DNA from: Chlorokybus atmophyticus
Lineage: Eukaryota; Plantae; Mesostigma and Chlorokybus algae
NCBI GenBank assembly: GCA_009103225.1
Contig: RHPI01003335.1
Span: 1 to 11,529 of the forward strand
Length of the DNA stretch: 11,529 nt
Direction: 5' to 3'
Part shown: positions 2,570-11,529 of the stretch, in pieces
How the letters are laid out: the number at the start of each line of letters is the position of its first letter
Numbering within the stretch: position 1 is the stretch's first letter
Notes under the pieces: generated by a model
The model's database searches: none
Told to the model about the DNA's origin: nothing
Seen by the model: the letters and a program-made list of their open reading frames with translations, nothing else
Translations under genes and position numbers: made by a program

Positions 2570-5500
2570 TTATAGGCTTCTGGTTGTCCTACGCTTGGGT
2601 CGACTCGTTGGAAGGAACCCCAGCAGCCACCCAAAGATATGTTCAACCACCTGTGTGGCACACATTGAGCACTAACATCCCGCAAGTGCGTTACAAAGTT
2701 TGTGCACAGCTCACACGCATAGAAACACGCACACAATTTGTGCACGCACCTCTTCCTGTTCTTCATCACCGTCATTGGCTGGCGACGACGCTTTGCTGGC
2801 AACGGGCATCCCATGCGTGATGCTCTGCGCCACGAGCAGCTCCAGCCTTTGCGTTTGGTTCTCAAGCCGCTCGGACAAGTCGCGCTTCGCACTCTGCCAT
2901 GCACGCATGGTAACTCACAGAGTGGCACCTTCTCAAAAGCTGCAACACACATGACATGTGCATATTGACATACCCTCAGTTGAGCAGCATTGTTGGATTC
3001 ATGCACCAGTGCGGCCGCGAGCCTCTTCTGGTTGCTGGACAGCTCAGATATCAGACCATGTATGCTGTCAATGACCCTCAGCTGCTCTTGTGACACTCCA
3101 CCAGCCTGGTTGGTGTGTAACACAACACGACAGTTGGTTAACTCTCCGTCATTATGTCTTTTGTTGTGATGCAGGCAGTGCAGTCCACCTTGAGAGCTTC
3201 TGCTGCTGCCGCTAGTGCGTCGCTGCCACTTGTGCCAGGCTTTTCGCTCGCAAGACCTGCAGCTGCTGTTGTTGATGTGTGTCCACGGTGTATGTTGTGT
3301 ATTCAATGTGTACACAACAAGGTGCATGCGTGCCTGCGCGTGTGCGCATCTGTGTGCGCGTGTGTGTGCCTTTATGTGTATCTGCGCGCATGTGCAACTG
3401 TATGCACGCGCGCATGTGTATGTGTGATCAGGAACTTGACCGGCAACACGAGCACAAAGCTTTACAAGCTCAACAAATAGCCTTACAATAATAGCACACA
3501 GCATTGTACAACGTCGTCAACCACCACCACCACCACCACCACCACCACCACCACCACAACAACAACAGCGGAACATACTTGGTGGAAACCTGAAGGATAC
3601 CAACCGATCAACACTCCTTGCGGACATGGATGTTGATCGCTCGAGGCGACGCACAACGGAGTCACTCGCTGCTGCACAAAGCACAAACAACAGGATTGTC
3701 AAGTCATATCTACGCTCTCAAATGACCAGGATGTTGATAACTTATGTGTGCATCTCATAAGCACAGTACCTGCTGCCATGGCAGCAGACACGGCAGCTGC
3801 AGCACGCGCAGAACCCTCCTCAGCAGCCTTCTCCAACGACTTCATTTTCTGCTCATCCTCTGAGCAATAGTAACAATTACATCATAATGATGGTGCTGCC
3901 TTGTTTCATCCATGCGTGCGTGTTCGTTTGTGCGTGTGTGTGTTGTTAGCAAGTGGTCCTTGTGCAGAGGACACGACACTGAACATGAAGGACTGCTCGC
4001 GAAGGCATGATACTTGACAGGATAGCACACAACAAATGAACTTGCTAGTTGGTGAGGCACTCACCTGCAAACTCAGCTTCATCTGTCTGCACAGCTATTG
4101 CTGCAGACGCTTTGGGTGCGCTTTCAGCGTGAGCCGCTGTGCCATTGGCCTGCGGCTTGCGGGGACTCACCTCCGCTAGCTGTCACAGCACACACAAATT
4201 CAGTAGAACACGCAGGCACTAGTCACAGCTGACACATAATCCACCAATGACATGCATGAGAGAATACAACTGTATATTATTGCATGCAACTTACAGGGCC
4301 GTCAAGCGAGGCTCTTCTCAATCTGATTGAAAGGTTGCGCTTCTCATCTTGCAGCGCCTCGACTTGCGCACGCAAAGCTGCGCGCTCGGCGGAAACCGAA
4401 TCCAAAGCCTGCCTGGCAAACAATGACGCTTGATACAAACCACTCTTTATGACGATGCGCATGCATACACACATTGCGAAGCAATGAACTGACATGACCA
4501 AAAAGGGCTCATGAGAAATTGGACAATAAACAACACGTACTTGCTGTGGGCGGCCTGCGATTGCAAGATATCAAAGTCTCGACGCAGCTTGAGCTCAGAT
4601 GACCTGAGTTTCAATAACTACAAGCCAAACATAAGATATAATGCGATAATCAAGCAATTTGTCATGATGCTCAACAGCATGGTGCACATATGTACACGTG
4701 AATCACCTTGTCCTCAAGTTCAACATTCTCCTTTGCAAGCGCCTGTGCGCGCTCAACAGCCTCCTGATAAAGCTTCTTGGCTTCGTTCTTCTCTGCTGAC
4801 AATGCTGCCAGCACCGCCTGCATGCACATGTAATCAACACACACGCGCATGCACAATATATGTAATCTTGAGGTAATGTATATGACCTTAGAACATTGCA
4901 CCGAATACGCAAAGTACCCACGATGCACACAGTCTTAAGGCACAGTATCCGTAAGAGGTGTATGTCAAGACTGGTGCAGCAACCAACAAAGCCAACTCAC
5001 TGTTTGCGCATTGATTTCTGCCTGATAGCGCTCTGCATCCAATTTGAGATTCTCAACCACTTTGCCCTGTGGACACACATGGCATCAGCCAACATGCAGG
5101 ACACAGAAGCAATGGATTGAAGCCAAAGCCAAAGGCAAGCGTGGACAATTGCATGCAAACCCGATACCAAAGCATTGTAGTTTTCGGCAAGAGAACTGTT
5201 CTCAATAGCCAGGGCGTTCGCAACAGCATTTTGTCCTTCTAACCCTCTCAAGAGTGCAAACTTCTCCTGTGTCAGGTCTTCAATGTGCTGCACACAGCTG
5301 ACACATAAGGCCAGCATGCACTAGTAACATGTCCATAATGCCAGGCCAAGCATATGTGTCTGCGTATTTCAATTCAAGGGCCGTGTATCAACCAGCTAAA
5401 CCTGCGTGAGTATGTCTACCACACATGTGTACATACGCCTGTGTGCATGTGCGCAAGCATGTCTACGCGTGCGCATGCGCATGCGAATGCGCATGCACGC

Positions 5501-7228
5501 ACGCGTGTACATGAATGTATACACATGTCTGCATGCGTGCGTGCATGTGAAACACTACAAAGAAACATGGCAAACAAGAGCCAACCTGCTGTAGGTCATG
5601 AAACTGGTTTGTTCCTGGTGTAGGAGGCGGCGGTGAAGCCGGCCTTGAAGCGGGTCGCGGTGGCGGCGGGGGCGGCTTTGGTAGCGGCGACTGCGGGCGC
5701 GAGTCCAGCCTCGGGGACGCGATGTTGGGATCTGACGTTGAGGGCGTCAACATGGTCGGCCTCGACGCGGTCCTTTGGAAGAAAGATGGTGACGCCAATG
5801 GCGTTGTTGCAGCAGACTGTTGTGCGGATGAAGAAGTCACTGTGGCTGCTGCATCACCAAATGACGGCCGCACAATCGTTTGATCATCGATTGGCAAGGA
5901 GTATGCTGGCCTCTGCTGGGTGGTCATGAACAATACGATTGTTTACCACTTAGCAATGGAAGCAACTCTGTGACCACTGCATGGGACAAGGCTTGCCTAC
6001 AGATTAAATATCTTGAGGCAATATAACAACATCAATGTCAAGTCTGCCTATCTGCAAGTGTGTGTTCATCTGTGTCAAGGGTTGCAAGAGCAGATGCATG
6101 CTACTATGCAGGGCCACAATTGGCAGTGACTCATCACAGGGTATGATGACATTCAGACTGGGTTTGCTCGGACCGTACCTGAGAGTTCATTGCAAGGCTT
6201 GTTGGAACACTGCTGCTTTGGTAATAGCCCAATGGGCTGGCTTGGTAGCCTGATGGCTGCTGCAGAGGGGAAACTGCTATTGATGGTTGTTGCTGTTGTT
6301 GTTGGCTTCCAGCAGCGTAGTACCGCATCGGACTGCCGGCAACACTTGAGGGTGACGTGGCTGCGTACGGATTGGGAGAGCTTGCGGGTGTGTTGTAAGG
6401 CTGGGACGGGACATATGAGCCAGACATTGGGTACGAAGGCCGCTGCCTGCAAGTTTTCGCTATGTGAGTTACCGTGCATATGATGTGTCAATTGTGCGGA
6501 AACCAAACTGTATAGAGAGCGTGAAGTACGCATGCAGGGGTTTGCTCCTACTAAACTGTGCACCGCTCAAGCATGCCAGGTATAGACTATGCAGCATGAG
6601 ACACATGTGGTTGTAATTGTTCTCCATTTTAGAGCTCGCGCATCGAACTACAAAGAACATTTCTTCTGCAACGCCTATTCTGTGAGATTGTCTGATAGCC
6701 AATAGTACATATTTGTCACGGCAGCATACATCACAAGCAGCATACAGCACAATAGTCTCGTTGACTGACTTTCCGGCTGCGTTCAGTACAAGCTTAAGCT
6801 ACTACAGAAGCAAGCATGCACAGAACTTCGTGGCACGCAATGCTTGAGGCAACTTGGTTTTCACACCGCTGGTTCATGATAGTGTTTAGAAAAGAGAAGA
6901 TCAGTCATACTGTCAGCCAATCTTGCATGCAGTGCATGAATTGAAAACACTGCGAGCATGCAATGCTCGTGGAGCAGCTAGCGTACACTGAGATCAGAAT
7001 ACTTGACGAGCTCATAAGCATATAGTAGTTGTCGCGTTGGTAAAGCACCAGCTTGCAGCACACATTACGCAAGCAAGCAAGCATAAGCGTCTACTCAGCT
7101 GGAAAGCTTGCCTTACGTAACAAGTAGACCTACTTAATTACTAGAGACAGCTGGCGGCAGCATGCCAATGAACACACACAGACACAACAACCAACACGCA
7201 CACAAGCACAAGCACACATGGCTTACAT
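2570..7228 (-). CDS. BLI: BLISTER-like (BLI/KOS1) long coiled-coil protein, 15 exons, about 604 aa
   Basis: Exons (plus coordinates, in transcript order): 7227-7228 (AT of the start), 6179-6446, 5586-5915, 5168-5287, 5001-5066, 4707-4817, 4541-4617, 4295-4412, 4065-4179, 3770-3859, 3579-3671, 3189-3256, 2974-3105, 2750-2893, 2570-2650. All introns are GT-AG and phase-consistent; the total is 1815 nt. Motifs QHIEDLTQEKF, LKLRSSELKLRR, LQDEKRNL, QLRVIDSIHGLISEL, LENQTQRLELL and C-terminal VVEHIFGWLLGFLPTSRPKRRTTRSL* match in order those recalled for Arabidopsis BLISTER (QHIEDLTQEKF, LRLRSNELKL, LEAQTQRLEL, VVERVLGW..KRRTSKLL). Tandem acceptors at 5912/5915, 3668/3671 and 3256/3262/3265 are unresolved, and the 5' end is uncertain. 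Confidence 0.88.
3322..3426. repeat. Alternating purine-pyrimidine (TG/CG/CA) intronic tract
   Basis: tgcatgcgtgcctgcgcgtgtgcgcatctgtgtgcgcgtgtgtgtg...gcatgtgtatgtgtg inside BLI intron 3257-3578. Confidence 0.8.
3521..3565. repeat. Compound trinucleotide microsatellite (CCA)12(CAA)3, read as (TTG)3(TGG)12 on the BLI sense strand
   Basis: Read directly at 3521-3556 and 3557-3565; starts about 13 nt into the intron after the donor at 3578. Confidence 0.9.
5420..5548. repeat. Alternating purine-pyrimidine intronic tract with imperfect self-complementarity
   Basis: cacacatgtgtacatacgcctgtgtgcatgtgcgcaagcatgtctacgcgtgcgcatgcgcatgcgaatgcgcatgcacgcacgcgtgtac... in BLI intron 5288-5585. Confidence 0.8.
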
Positions 7229-7377
7229 GGTGTGGCAGCAGGAAGTTGCGGGGTAGACCTTTCAGGGCCCTGAAACAGGAGCAAGCTAATTGAGGGAGAA
7301 TGCTGATAACCACCCCACCTACGCTACTACGCCTCTACGACACTTGCATCCACCTTCACAGCCATGTCACCAGCGCG
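7229..7377. promoter_or_regulatory. Compact bidirectional promoter / 5' UTR region between BLI-like (-) and ARH-like (+) genes
   Basis: Only 149 bp separate the BLI start (7228) from the first plausible ARH start (7378). The sequence is C/T-rich on the minus strand left of about 7300 and C-rich on the plus strand to its right, like two outward-facing UTRs. It contains the palindrome TTTCAGGGCCCTGAAA (7260-7275). Confidence 0.5.
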
Positions 7378-7489
7378 ATGCTGGCTGTGGCTAGCCGGTC
7401 CAGCTCGTCCACTTTCACCTCCTCACACCTTCGCCTTTCCCCTCGCCTCCGCTTCCACGCCTCCGCAGCGATCACCAGGCAAAGCGTAG
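7364..7489 (+). promoter_or_regulatory. Out-of-frame upstream ORF (41 aa) overlapping the first ARH AUG
   Basis: gccATG at 7364 runs MSPARCWLWLAGPARPLSPPHTFAFPLASASTPPQRSPGKA to TAG at 7487-7489. It spans AUG 7378 and ends 128 nt before AUG 7618. It matters only if the transcription start is upstream of 7364. Confidence 0.35.
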
Positions 7490-10400
7490 CACGGATCAGG
7501 CTTAATACGGCAGCTCCACCACCTCCTGGGCAAAGCTGCCCAGGAGGCGGTGGAGGCGGCGGCGGCGGACGTCGTGGTGGAGGCGGAGAAGTAGGTTGTG
7601 GTAGTGCTAGTATAGCGATGGCCGCCGCGGAGGATGTGCGCAGCAGAATGTCCGCCGCCCTGCTGGGCATGTTTGTCGGGGACGCCCTTGCCATGCCCGT
7701 GCATTGGGTAAGCACAAGCAAGCAGCATTGCCAGTGGTCGTGTTCGTTGGCTGAACTGCATGCATGCTGGCTGGAATGCTTACTTGCTACTCTTCACATC
7801 GTTTGTCTATTGGGTGGTTTGTCCGGTTGTTTGTTGACCAGCTTGCCTGCCTGCTTGTGTACTTGCTTGTGCGTTTGTTTATGTGCGTGCTTGTTTATGT
7901 GTTTGTTGAGTTGGTTGTCTGTCTGTCTGTTTGGCTGTCTGCTTTCCTTCTGTGTTGCTTGTTTGCATGCATTCGTGCGTGCGCATACACACAATGGTCA
8001 GTTGACCAACAATGCAAGAAGGCTAAGTTGGCATGCACACACAGTTTCGGTTGTCTTTGTGTGACTGCTGCTTGAGCCTGCTAGTTGTCAATGCAGCTCA
8101 GTCGGTCTGCAAGACCATATTTGCGCACAAAGAAAATCAATAGGTCTAATCCAACCACTTTTTGTCAGACAGACTATCTGCATAACAACCTGTTGACAGC
8201 TGATGCGATTCAAATTCATGTGTGTGCTGCGCAGTATTACAGTACGGGTCTGCTCAAGCAAGACTACGGCGAGGTAAAAGGCTACCTGCAGCCCAAAAAG
8301 CACCACCCGCAATCAATGGTGCATTCGACGACTTACGAGCCAGCCGACGCTGACAAGTTCGACATACTTCATGACCAGGCCGTTCATTACGGCACCAAAG
8401 AAAAGGGCAGCGAGTATGAGCTTAACAAAGTGAGTGAGTCTTGTTATGATTGTGACAGCGTGTGATGTTGTGGTGTTGCGTATGAGATGTGATGACAGCT
8501 GTCTCAGGAAGGCGGGGGAGTTCTTCCATTATCATGGCAACCTGCCTGCGGGCGGCAACACTCTCAACTTACAGGTGTGTTGTAAAGTCATGTATACTGT
8601 AAAATCGGAGCATGCACCTCAGCGACTGCATATGCGTGCGTGCACATAACAACACTCATATGCGTATAGGTGCACGTGCGTGTGATGGCGTGCGTGCGCG
8701 TGCGCGTGTGTGTGTGTGTTTGCGCGTGCATTTGCGCGCGCAAGTGAGTGCGTGGGTGCGTGCGCAGGCTTGTACTCCAACCACCACATATATGTATACA
8801 CGCACGTGCACGCAATTGACACCGCAGGGTACACTATAATCTTGATGATGCATGTTCACCCCTTCATATTGGAGAATCTTAGGCATCCTCTCTTTTGCCA
8901 CAGTTGCTGCGTTTGCTCATGCGGACAATTGTGAAGAACGGCGGCAAGTACGATGCGCATCAGTACCTCGCTGCGTTCCGCGACTTCATGCTTACGGCCG
9001 GCAGCCATAAAGACACGTTTGTGGAAAGCTACATACGAAAGTACTTTGAGGCGTATTCAAGAGGCAAGGTAAGTGCAAATGGGCTCATTACTGTCTGTTT
9101 GCAAGCATGTGCTCAAGCACCGTGGGCCAAAAGATGGTGTAACTGTTTTGTGTGACTTAACTCTCAGTACAAACTCATGCAGTGGCAAATGTAATCAAAC
9201 TTATGCAGCCTGAGACAGAGTGCGCCATCTCGCAAAAAGAATTTTGGTCCATCGCGAGCATGAGCGGCTGCTTGACAGCTGTCCCCTTGACAATGCTCTT
9301 CCTTGGTGATGAAGCACAGTAAGTAAAGTTCTTGATGTGTTGATTATTGTTTGAATGTGGTGACTTCTCGTGTTAATCACTGTGTTTAGCTGCCCTTTTT
9401 TTATGGTTGTTATACGATTTTGTCCTGGTGTATGAGTTTCTGGTTTGCTTTGTGCAAAGCTTCTGCTCTGGTTTGATAAAGCTTGTATGTGCAGGGCAGA
9501 GAGTGTGGCGGTAGCGCACCATCGTTTGTTTCACAATTCTGAGACGGTGGAAGAGACGACGCGCGACATCTGCAAACTGCTCATGACCTTGTTGACAGCA
9601 GGCAGCAATAAGCCTTTGCCTCAGTTGCACAACGCTGCAGGCAGGTTATGTTGCCTGAGTGTATCAGCTGTTGAGGTGCTGCATGTGCGCATACGTGTGT
9701 GTGCATGTGCGCGCGCGCGCCCATGCACTAGTGCGTGTGTGCAAGTGCGCTTGCACACGTGTACATGTATGCAAATGTGTACATGTGTGCGTGCGTATGC
9801 GTGTGGGTGCGTGTGTGTGGCAGACCCACAAACAGCCACATTGTCATGCAGCAAGACAGCATTTGCCCAAAGCCACCGGCGACGAGATGTTGAAAAAGTA
9901 CCAGGAGGCGAACTCACCTTACAACATACCCGCTGACGAGATGTACAAGCTGCATAGAGACATGGAGGAGAACACCTTTGACATTGATGCAGCTCTGAAG
10001 CAACCCGTAGAAGAGGTACAAGCCCAAACTTTCTCCACCAGTGATACTGTGTATCACCATTCAAGGCATCGGTCCAATTAAGAACTTTCAACAACTTGTC
10101 AACAATTATTTGTGAGTGGGTGGATGGGTAAGTGGGTGCGCGCGCGCGCGTGTGCGTGCGTGTCCAACACATGTGTGCGTGCGTGTGGGACCCCACACGC
10201 ACGCACACATGTGCATGTACACACATATTCATATAAATAGAGGCAAGATGTTGGCACTTGACAGATCTATGTACTGCGTGATTTGTATGCATGTATGTTC
10301 AAGTGTGAGAATGGTTAAGCCTCTTAGTTCGTCACTGCATATGTCCATTTCAAGGTGTTGGGCAAGCGTTTGATGACCGCGTGCTACCCCGAGCATGGTT

Positions 10401-10888
10401 ACCCGGCGCTGCTGTATCTGGCGCTGAAGTGCGGTGGGGACTTTGAGGCCGCGCTGCTGGCGAACACGAACGCTGGCGGGGACAGCGTCCATCGCGGGGC
10501 TCTGCTCGGCGCGGTCCTTGGCGCAGCGGGTAAGCGCGCGACATTGACATGTGGCATTGACTACTCACACCTGTCGTGTGAGCACATCGTTTCGTGTACG
10601 TTCGCGCGTTGCTGTACGTGTGAGTGTGCGCCAAGACGCGTGTATGATTGCGCGGGTGCGCGCATTCGCGCGTTGGCTCTGTCTGTAATGTATATATGCT
10701 TTGTTTACTCTCTACTGTGTTGGTGTCAAGGTGGTATGCAGTCCATCCCGCAGCATCTCATTGACGGTCTAGCAGAGAGAGACGGCATCAAAGCGGATAT
10801 CGACGCGTTTGTTGAGCTTGCGTCAAGTAAGTACGAATTGATGCAGATGCTTCGCCAAGCGGATATCCCTTTTGGACTGATGAGATAA
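7378..10888 (+). CDS. ADP-ribosylglycohydrolase (DraG/ARH/crystallin-J1 fold) family protein, divergent clade, 9 exons, about 501 aa with putative transit peptide (about 421 aa from AUG 7618)
   Basis: Exons 7378-7707, 8235-8429, 8512-8574, 8904-9068, 9209-9318, 9495-9644, 9856-10015, 10355-10529, 10731-10888 (1506 nt). The boundaries of introns 2 and 6 have alternative in-frame solutions. Motifs: SAALLGMFVGDALAMPVHWYY, DILHDQA, HYHGNLPAGGNTLNLQ, FMLTAGSHKDTFVESY, TACYPEHGYPALLYLALK, DFEAALLANTNAGGDSVHRGALLGAVLGAA, IPQHLIDGL. The N-terminal GDA helix and C-terminal ANxGGD..GAxLGA..IP are family hallmarks. Confidence 0.9.
7514..7555 (+). other. GC-rich 19-bp hairpin (1 mismatch, AAGC loop) within ARH exon 1
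   Basis: CTCCACCACCTCCTGGGCA (7514-7532) / TGCCCAGGAGGCGGTGGAG (7537-7555); encodes PPPPGQSCPGGGG. Confidence 0.85.
7760..7985 (+). repeat. Degenerate tetranucleotide (TTGT/TTGC/CTGT) low-complexity tract in ARH intron 1
   Basis: gcttgcctgcctgcttgtgtacttgcttgtgcgtttgtttatgtgcgtgcttgtttatgtgtttgttgagttggttgtctgtctgtctgtttggctgtctgc; G recurs about every 4 nt. Confidence 0.75.
8630..8812. repeat. Alternating purine-pyrimidine (GT/GC) tract in ARH intron 3
   Basis: gcgtgcgtgcgcgtgcgcgtgtgtgtgtgtgtttgcgcgtgcatttgcgcgcgcaagtgagtgcgtgggtgcgtgcgc... Confidence 0.8.
9680..9820. repeat. Alternating purine-pyrimidine tract in ARH intron 6
   Basis: tgcatgtgcgcatacgtgtgtgtgcatgtgcgcgcgcgcgc...gtgcgtgcgtatgcgtgtgggtgcgtgtgtgtgg. 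Confidence 0.8.
10168..10213. repeat. Perfect 22-bp inverted repeat with 2-nt spacer in ARH intron 7
   Basis: CACATGTGTGCGTGCGTGTGGG (10168-10189) + AC + CCCACACGCACGCACACATGTG (10192-10213); exact reverse complements. Confidence 0.92.
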
Positions 10889-11123
10889 GTGTCCATTGGC
10901 GACCCAAAACTGCACAACACACGCTCTTCAGCCCTACTTATTTACTGTTTACATATCAATGCCTGTGCCCTGGCTTGCACCCTCCCTATCCGCTTATGAT
11001 ATTACCCTGTGTATTGTGACCAACTGTTAAGGGCTGAGGTTTTGTGCAAAGCTGTTAAACGACGCGTGCTTTGGCTTGCCGTTTAGAGTAAGGGCTTTAT
11101 TCTATGATGGCAGTAAGCTCTAT

Positions 11124-11175: not shown

Positions 11176-11360
11176 AGAACTCAAACTGTTGATTGGTCAC
11201 AAAGACTGCATGCATGTAGCTTTGAGCCTTCCAATCAGCTGACACACCAATAAACAAAGGGAGTCAAGCAGTGACATCATTATTCATTGGTGTGGAGCAC
11301 AACACAAGTGGGTATCTGCTTCGTAAGCACTTATGCGTGCCACTTTGCATTCAATTAAAC

Positions 11361-11421
11361 TCATGAAGAGGTAAGCAGCGATGGGTCTGCCCAGTTAACA
11401 AAGCTGATACCTTGGGCAGCG
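11361..11421 (-). CDS. Candidate terminal exon of a convergent gene extending beyond the window
   Basis: After the (GT)n tract on the minus strand, acceptor catcTAG is followed by xAAQGISFVNWADPSLLTSS* (TGA at 11363-11361). A minus-strand TGTAA lies at 10949-10953. Too short to identify. Confidence 0.25.
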
Positions 11422-11451
11422 CTAGATGTGGCACATAATTGAAGCGGGAGT

Positions 11452-11452
<1 letters not shown>

Positions 11453-11529
<77 letters not shown>
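11453..11529. repeat. (AC)38+ microsatellite running off the window end
   Basis: Uninterrupted AC repeat of 77 nt to the last base; probably an assembly break point. Confidence 0.98.

Follow-up and report, generated by a model that had tools for sequence, protein, structure and literature searches.

The window analysed here is the whole 11,529-nucleotide contig RHPI01003335.1 of the alga Chlorokybus atmophyticus (GenBank assembly GCA_009103225.1). It carries, on the plus strand, a nine-exon nuclear gene (7300/7618-10888, depending on the start codon) that is spliced and transcribed and whose product is a PF03747 (ARH/DraG) protein. Six-frame translation and lists of open reading frames (ORFs) reveal peptides resembling ADP-ribosylglycohydrolases (ARHs), separated by repeat-rich introns. 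The gene is a long-form member of a large, widespread, uncharacterised PF03747 subfamily, here termed the HWYY clade; the name is operational and was coined in this analysis, and a published definition was not found. The overall reading, which we hold to be probable with real room for doubt, is an expressed nuclear gene of the long-form HWYY clade with a conserved, remodelled site that is likely working at clade level and is further modified in the window copy.

The exon structure was mapped with Logan contigs from four runs placed on window positions 7200-11100, with 8682-8731 and 10125-10166 skipped as repeats. These runs are presumed to be RNA; their contigs carry the spliced form without introns, as expected of RNA. 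Eight joints are common to runs X1 and X2 and in part to X3, with support from two studies, and no base differences or indels were seen between the contigs of these three runs and the window. The splice dinucleotides, checked for all introns, are GT..AG in seven cases and GC..AG in one (9641-9851), the latter backed by three runs. Microsatellites of the (CA)n/(TG)n type are abundant in the introns and the 3' flank (8640-8830, 9690-9830, 10120-10240, and 11351-11528).

The coding sequence comprises 1584 nt and encodes 527 amino acids from the ATG at 7300, 501 from that at 7378, and 421 from that at 7618; a stop codon lies in frame directly upstream of the ATG at 7300. The first-pass annotation, made from the sequence alone, began the protein at 7618, which is in frame, yet is the third in-frame ATG; the motifs that it named, including HYH and HKDT, all lie on the plus strand where it had placed them (Table 1). 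The few substitutions at otherwise conserved positions might suggest a decaying gene, a pseudogene, or an annotation artefact. This is highly improbable, as the reading frame is intact over nine exons, spliced RNA occurs in two independent studies (contig depth ~110 in X1), and most family hallmarks are kept.

Table 1. Exons and motifs of the ARH gene in window coordinates.
Feature	Position	Strand	Content	Support
Exon 1	7300 (ATG)-7707	+	N-terminal extension, then first ARH motif GDALAMPVHW	RNA contig unbroken 7226-7706; joint 7707-8235
Exon 2	8235-8429	+	YY of HWYY; HHPQS (family HPxS); start of family-specific insert	RNA joints, family alignment
Exon 3	8512-8574	+	HYH and AGGNTLN	Joints 8429-8512 and 8574-8904; 0 base differences in X1/X2
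Exon 4	8904-9068	+	GSHKDTFVESYIRKYF, the family motif HxDxYxE..R with Tyr to Phe	RNA joints, family alignment
Exon 5	9209-9318	+	WSIAS (long-form motif WSIGS)	RNA joints, exon search
Exon 6	9495-9640	+	RLFHNS at family/canonical LTH/PTH (Thr to Phe); followed by the GC..AG intron	RNA joints, column statistics, hhalign to YegU, splice-site check
Exon 7	9852-10015	+	Long-form insert with SPYNIP (family GPGNIP)	RNA joints, exon search
Exon 8	10355-10529	+	ACYPEHG and NTNAGGDSVHRGA (C-terminal metal-site motif)	Pfam 45.7 bits, 494 library matches, DraG alignment
Exon 9	10731-10888	+	Stop codon TAA 10886-10888; 3' untranslated region covered to at least 11062	X2 contig 10730-11062
GDALAMPVHW	7678-7707	+	ARH motif in exon 1	
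HYH	8527-8535	+	In exon 3	
AGGNTLN	8548-8568	+	In exon 3	
GSHKDT	9000-9017	+	In exon 4	
GGDSVHRGA	10475-10501	+	In exon 8	

The nine exons were analysed separately throughout, in searches and in the alignment. Against PF03747 (ADP_ribosyl_GH), exon 8 alone clears the gathering score of 26.2 (E 9e-12), and exon 1 gives a weak match of 17.9 bits over profile positions 1-19. Exon 8 by itself retrieved 494 proteins in an exhaustive HMMER search, and the full-length ones among them carry the unusual motifs of the window protein. The first-pass annotation had proposed a hidden Markov model search for defining the clade, and such searches delimited a large, uncharacterised subfamily. With further searches and inspection of the sequences, it splits into a short form (~362 residues, about 360-370) and a long form (~420 residues, with WSIGS and GPGNIP inserts). 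The short form occurs in Planctomycetota-type bacteria, Methylotenera, and others, as well as in the green algae Chlorella, Gonium, Edaphochlamys, Pleodorina, and Chlamydomonas eustigma. The long form occurs in bacterial metagenome-assembled genomes (MAGs), Corallochytrium, Hondaea, and MMETSP and EukProt transcripts.

The window protein is of the long form. Both inserts are present, as WSIAS and SPYNIP, exons 5 and 7 match only long-form proteins, and 9/9 exons match long-form proteins at 41-51% identity, with no closer relative found. Its nearest relatives are proteins from bacterial MAGs and scattered protists. A search through bacterial and archaeal genomes, one for each species, uncovered 394 bacterial genome loci that encode the long form, spanning Nitrosospira/Nitrosomonas, Desulfobacterota, Campylobacterota, Bacteroidales, Verrucomicrobiota, Planctomycetota, and Spirochaetes. 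Green-algal short-form proteins such as Chlorella CHLNCDRAFT_137616 and Gonium GPECTOR_23g55 carry the same clade hallmarks (in their case HWYY, HYH, GENT, HNDTY, and GGENCHRG), but they lack the WSIGS and GPGNIP inserts, measure ~360-370 residues, and resemble Planctomycetota-type proteins most. The window's own annotated protein and orthologues in related algae were not found with exon-sized queries, under a search filter that excludes full-length matches, and an ESM Atlas search returned generic ARH clusters only.

A binuclear metal centre is common to all characterised ARHs, and ARH3 depends critically on its flap Glu (PMC7050489); the DraG motif consists of E28, D60, and D97 (PMC8120803). 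In HMMER comparisons with the PDB, the His of MPVH aligns to the Glu of GDALGATVE in DraG (Glu28, allowing for the tag) and to that of MJ1187, and the clade segment GGDnvhRG aligns to GGDADTTG of DraG. Alignment of the clade to Escherichia coli YegU (L086:8096-9100) by hhalign, at a probability of 94.8%, confirms both equivalences and also sets LTH on PTH and the N-T of GENT on the D-T of TDDT. By continuity, the G-[D/E] of the clade motif would correspond to the T-D of TDDT, a mapping that fits with the helix starting directly after the Thr in the AlphaFold2 model of the homologue P0276. For the TDD equivalence we rely on the hhalign comparison with YegU, because a profile of the HYH-GENT-HxDxY region gave only chance matches against the PDB. 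Just before the TDDT-equivalent motif, a clade-specific insert of ~65-75 residues adds invariant His and Tyr residues (HWYY, HPxS, and HYH).

The canonical catalytic Glu after GDALG (DraG E28, ARH3 E41) is His in the window and in 100% of 218 relatives. The canonical T-D-D-T (DraG D60 and the next Asp) reads G-[D/E]-N-T in the clade and G-G-N-T in the window, the canonical T-H is T-H in the clade and F-H in the window, and the canonical G-G-D-x-D-T becomes G-G-[D/E]-N-x-H and G-G-D-S-V-H, respectively. The last of these keeps the first Asp, with Val in place of the second and His in place of the Thr. The first-pass annotation had drawn its equivalences by eye and described an ARH/DraG fold in which the ligands of the Glu, TDD, and DxDT motifs are replaced, two of them by His; HMMER against DraG and hhalign against YegU support the equivalences, and the description is correct by profile alignment. 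The kept first Asp, together with the shared fold and Pfam family, could also be expected of an ordinary ARH, a protein de-ADP-ribosylase of the DraG/ARH1/ARH3 type in which other acidic residues fill the metal positions. This alternative is very unlikely, since His, Gly, Asn, Val, and His occupy five canonical ligand positions in the HMMER and hhalign alignments and the scores fall far under the equivalog cut-offs (48.8 bits or less where the DraG model requires 337, and 30.5 or less where Tri1 requires 490).

Conservation of the unusual site was assessed in an alignment of 218 full-length relatives, to which the window exon peptides were added one by one as fragments. This set spans many bacterial phyla as well as green algae, Corallochytrium, and Hondaea, and at 90-100% its members have in common GDALAMPVHWYY, HYH, G[D/E]NT, HxDxYxE..R, LTH, and GG[D/E]NxHRG. 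From the N-terminus, conservation is 99% for the D of GDAL, 100% for the H of MPVH, 100/100/95/100% for H-W-Y-Y, 99/95% for the H-P of HPxS, and 100% for each residue of H-Y-H. In G-x-N-T, the G, N, and T reach 100, 97, and 100%; the D and Y of HxDxY reach 100/99%, and the E and R that follow reach 96/100%. The T-H of LTH is conserved at 97/97% and C-Y at 100/99%. In the C-terminal motif, G-G is at 100%, the next position is acidic in 98%, the His of NxH is at 90%, and R-G is at 100/96%.

Overall column identity in the clade alignments is just 37-38%, and such strict motif conservation at ~37% identity therefore makes a selected, working site likely, rather than decay. At the family level, the alignments suggest that the clade most likely has a working active site that is differently liganded. 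The first-pass annotation had compared the protein with ARH2, SelJ, and J1-crystallins, whose degeneracy is loss without conserved replacements. The comparison is a poor fit, as the replacements are near-invariant in the clade (90-100% conserved, in bacteria and eukaryotes). Its "rebuilt" site is indeed non-canonical and contains His, yet it is the hallmark of a widespread clade and is not peculiar to this gene or to algae. It had also left the choice between a pseudo-enzyme and a His-based site; conservation favours the second option at the family level.

The window copy matches 38/40 columns conserved at >=95%, the exceptions being Tyr to Phe in DTY and Thr to Phe in LTH. GDALAMPVHWYY, HPxS, and HYH, whose family columns are 95-100% conserved, are all present; HxDxYxE..R, LTH, CYxEHGxP, and GG[D/E][N/S]xHRG are present with the substitutions DTF and LFH. 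The G[D/E]NT residue that is D or E in ~95% of relatives is Gly in the window, and the Gly codon is confirmed in RNA contigs of X1 and X2. In a handful of relatives, this residue is Q, N, A, K, or M. Non-acidic residues at this column are found among eukaryotes in Hondaea and an MMETSP transcript (Q) and in [Myrmecia] bisecta (A), and also in a few bacteria; the cases are few, and their pattern suggests repeated loss of the carboxylate in eukaryotes. The Gly of G[D/E]NT and the Phe for the Thr of LTH are departures from the protein's own clade that the first-pass annotation overlooked.

Such departures, the Phe of DTF included, are what would be expected if the algal copy had no catalysis and served as an organellar reader of ADP-ribose or nucleotides or as the scaffold of a complex. 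The Thr of the TH motif is kept even in the canonical YegU, and the non-acidic variants recur in eukaryotic members. The kept columns are nonetheless unlike those of a decayed pocket, as they include all His, Asp493 and Glu497 (alignment columns), Cys-Tyr, and GGD..HR. A binding-only pseudo-enzyme or structural subunit is therefore a doubtful alternative. We consider it somewhat more likely than not that the window copy is still an enzyme, and a binding or scaffold role considerably less probable.

In the mechanism proposed for the clade as a whole, the fixed changes of the Glu-flap Glu to His, of T-D-D-T to G-[D/E]-N-T, and of D-x-D-T to [D/E]-N-x-His would place a His/carboxylate metal centre where canonical enzymes have an all-oxygen binuclear one. 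The clade may thus comprise metal-dependent glycohydrolases acting on an ADP-ribose-like ribosyl conjugate. With GGNT, the window protein appears to lack the one carboxylate that the clade retains from TDD, and the Thr of LTH is missing as well, so that it would be an enzyme whose chemistry is weakened or altered, or else a derivative that binds a ligand. The analysis shows how the gene is built, that it is expressed, to which family it belongs, which residues correspond, and how strongly they are conserved; metal use, substrate, activity, and organellar location we infer. A more specific proposal, which we offer tentatively and think may well be wrong, sets the HWYY clade apart as a catalytic class of its own within the ARH fold. 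Its His/carboxylate centre could contain Zn, Fe, or mononuclear Mn, and its enzymes would act on some substrate that is neither Arg- nor Ser-ADP-ribose. In this proposal, green algae would have brought a copy with further changes into an organelle, where it would hydrolyse or sense a metabolite related to ADP-ribose.

The fold was predicted for P0276, the closest full-length homologue, from a 60-sequence alignment. The model (pLDDT 95.7, pTM 0.95) has the ARH fold, and Foldseek against the PDB returned MJ1187, Tri1, Lmo0067, DraG, and ARH3 as top matches at 13-17% identity; used alone as sequence queries against the PDB, exons 2, 4, and 8 retrieved nothing relevant. DraG (dinitrogenase reductase-activating glycohydrolase; PDB 2WOC/2WOE, 3G9D) has the same all-alpha ARH fold as this model and belongs to the same Pfam family, and GDAL and the C-terminal N-x-GGD align directly. 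At 14-16% identity, however, Glu28 of DraG is replaced by His, TDD by GGN (G[D/E]N in the clade), and D-x-D-T by D-S-V-H, and the stretch from motif I to motif II is longer by ~65-75 residues, besides the long-form inserts. A DraT or GlnB-type context was not found. Human ARH3 (ADPRHL2; PDB 6D36 and others) also has the same fold (Foldseek E ~1e-8, 13-15% identity), but its Glu41 flap and binuclear Mg ligands are not conserved in the clade. The uncharacterised MJ1187 (PDB 1T5J) is the best structural and HMMER match, and the likewise uncharacterised YegU aligns over the full length. Both share the TH motif and GGD with the clade but, unlike it, keep the Glu, TDDT, and DxDT.

ARH folds also occur in organellar machines. 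ArhL is an ARH-like stromal subunit of the Chlamydomonas Orf2971-FtsHi import motor with partly conserved catalytic residues (bioRxiv 10.1101/2024.09.02.610899; PDB 8XKS), and mt-SAF23 is a trypanosome mitoribosome assembly factor. Because these proteins set a precedent for ARH folds as organellar structural subunits, a scaffold role stays in contention for the window protein. Like the window protein, ArhL is a green-algal ARH-fold protein; its organellar location is known, whereas that of the window protein is presumed. Orthology to ArhL, which would have favoured a scaffold, was rejected: 8XKS chain Q has 12% identity to P0276 and Foldseek rank 25, and HMMER did not recover 8XKS with any of three queries, namely a long-form protein, a short-form protein of the Chlamydomonas clade, and the long-form profile. 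Separately, Chlamydomonas Cre01.g016150, annotated as "ADP-ribosylglycohydrolase", is among the singlet-oxygen-responsive genes in a table of the SAK1 study (PMC4067076).

The bacterial gene context was studied by inspection of 3 contigs and ORF clustering over 80 genome loci. A GltB-like flavin mononucleotide (FMN) protein with a CDGSH iron-sulfur domain adjoins the long-form ARH gene in 7 Campylobacterota loci; at L080:4416-5960 and the six others, the two genes share a strand with gaps of -45 to +16 bases, and the pair may form an operon. Other recurring neighbours, MFS transporters at ~9 loci and YceI at 5 loci, are weak leads. In a spirochaete-type MAG, the protein P0284 (L004:8001-9767) has a NUDIX domain fused N-terminally to a long-form HWYY ARH, and its gene adjoins one for a phosphoenolpyruvate-utilising enzyme. 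Assignment of this NUDIX domain as a defined ADP-ribose pyrophosphatase was rejected, as it resembles the YfcD/IDI type and lies below model cut-offs. Tandem double HWYY-type ARH domains occur in the metagenomic proteins P0001 (780 aa) and P0035 (775 aa). The NUDIX-ARH fusion is compatible with nucleotide-sugar chemistry, and the fusions and tandems hint weakly at a role in the metabolism of nucleotides or small ribosyl compounds rather than in the removal of protein modifications.

Of the 80 residues from the Met at 7378 up to the ARH domain, 9 are R/K, 1 is D/E, 17 are S/T, and 10 are A; a Gly run comes next. These counts show an S/A/R-rich, acid-poor N-terminal extension, which the first-pass annotation had read as a transit peptide. 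Judged by composition, the extension (~80-106 residues) plausibly resembles an organellar presequence, and the window protein is probably organelle-targeted; the organellar ADP-ribose function suggested earlier is kept here as conjecture. A 41-codon out-of-frame ORF on the plus strand (7364-7489) is described as lying between the in-frame ATGs at 7300 and 7378.

The X1 RNA contig joins 6445 to 7226, and its loose 5' end maps to 6416-6445. This join is a minus-strand intron, since the skipped stretch reads CT..AC on the plus strand, and the 5' part of the contig belongs to a divergent minus-strand neighbour and is not an upstream exon of the ARH gene. The neighbour has an ATG near 6427 and a Q/P/S-rich N-terminus, and its first exon overlaps the 5' region of the ARH gene, giving head-to-head overlapping transcripts; because of this overlap, the transcription start of the ARH gene is only putative. 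Minus-strand ORF pieces at 4277-5317 are heptad-like and coiled-coil-looking and are probably exons of the neighbouring gene.

Several points weigh against a remodelled, working site in an expressed member of this clade. The fold evidence comes from the model of the homologue P0276, not of the window protein, and the PDB holds no solved structure of any clade member (best identity 13-17%). By alignment, the clade keeps neither the binuclear ligand set nor the flap Glu of characterised ARHs (PMC7050489). The window protein appears to have no acidic residue matching DraG D60 under the mapping given above, which weakens the case for catalysis in this copy. The first-pass annotation had pointed to bacterial gene neighbourhoods as a check, and the 3 contigs and 80 genome loci contained no conserved operon or partner and no ADP-ribosyltransferase, sirtuin, or macrodomain partner. 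NCBIfam has no curated model for the clade, with only far-sub-threshold DraG and Tri1 matches, and no description of the clade was found in the open-access literature searched.

Should the clade prove to be an ordinary ADP-ribose hydrolase with other ligands, the outcome would be a modest refinement of annotation. In current reviews, the hydrolases of the ARH fold are presented as binuclear Mg/Mn enzymes reliant on the Glu flap (PMC7050489), and here a large clade swaps these ligands in a fixed, conserved way. The clade reaches ammonia oxidisers, sulfur oxidisers, sulfate reducers, Planctomycetota, Spirochaetes, green algae, and other protists. Organellar ADP-ribose biology is poorly known, and the algal copy is a natural variant without one carboxylate that is possibly imported into an organelle.

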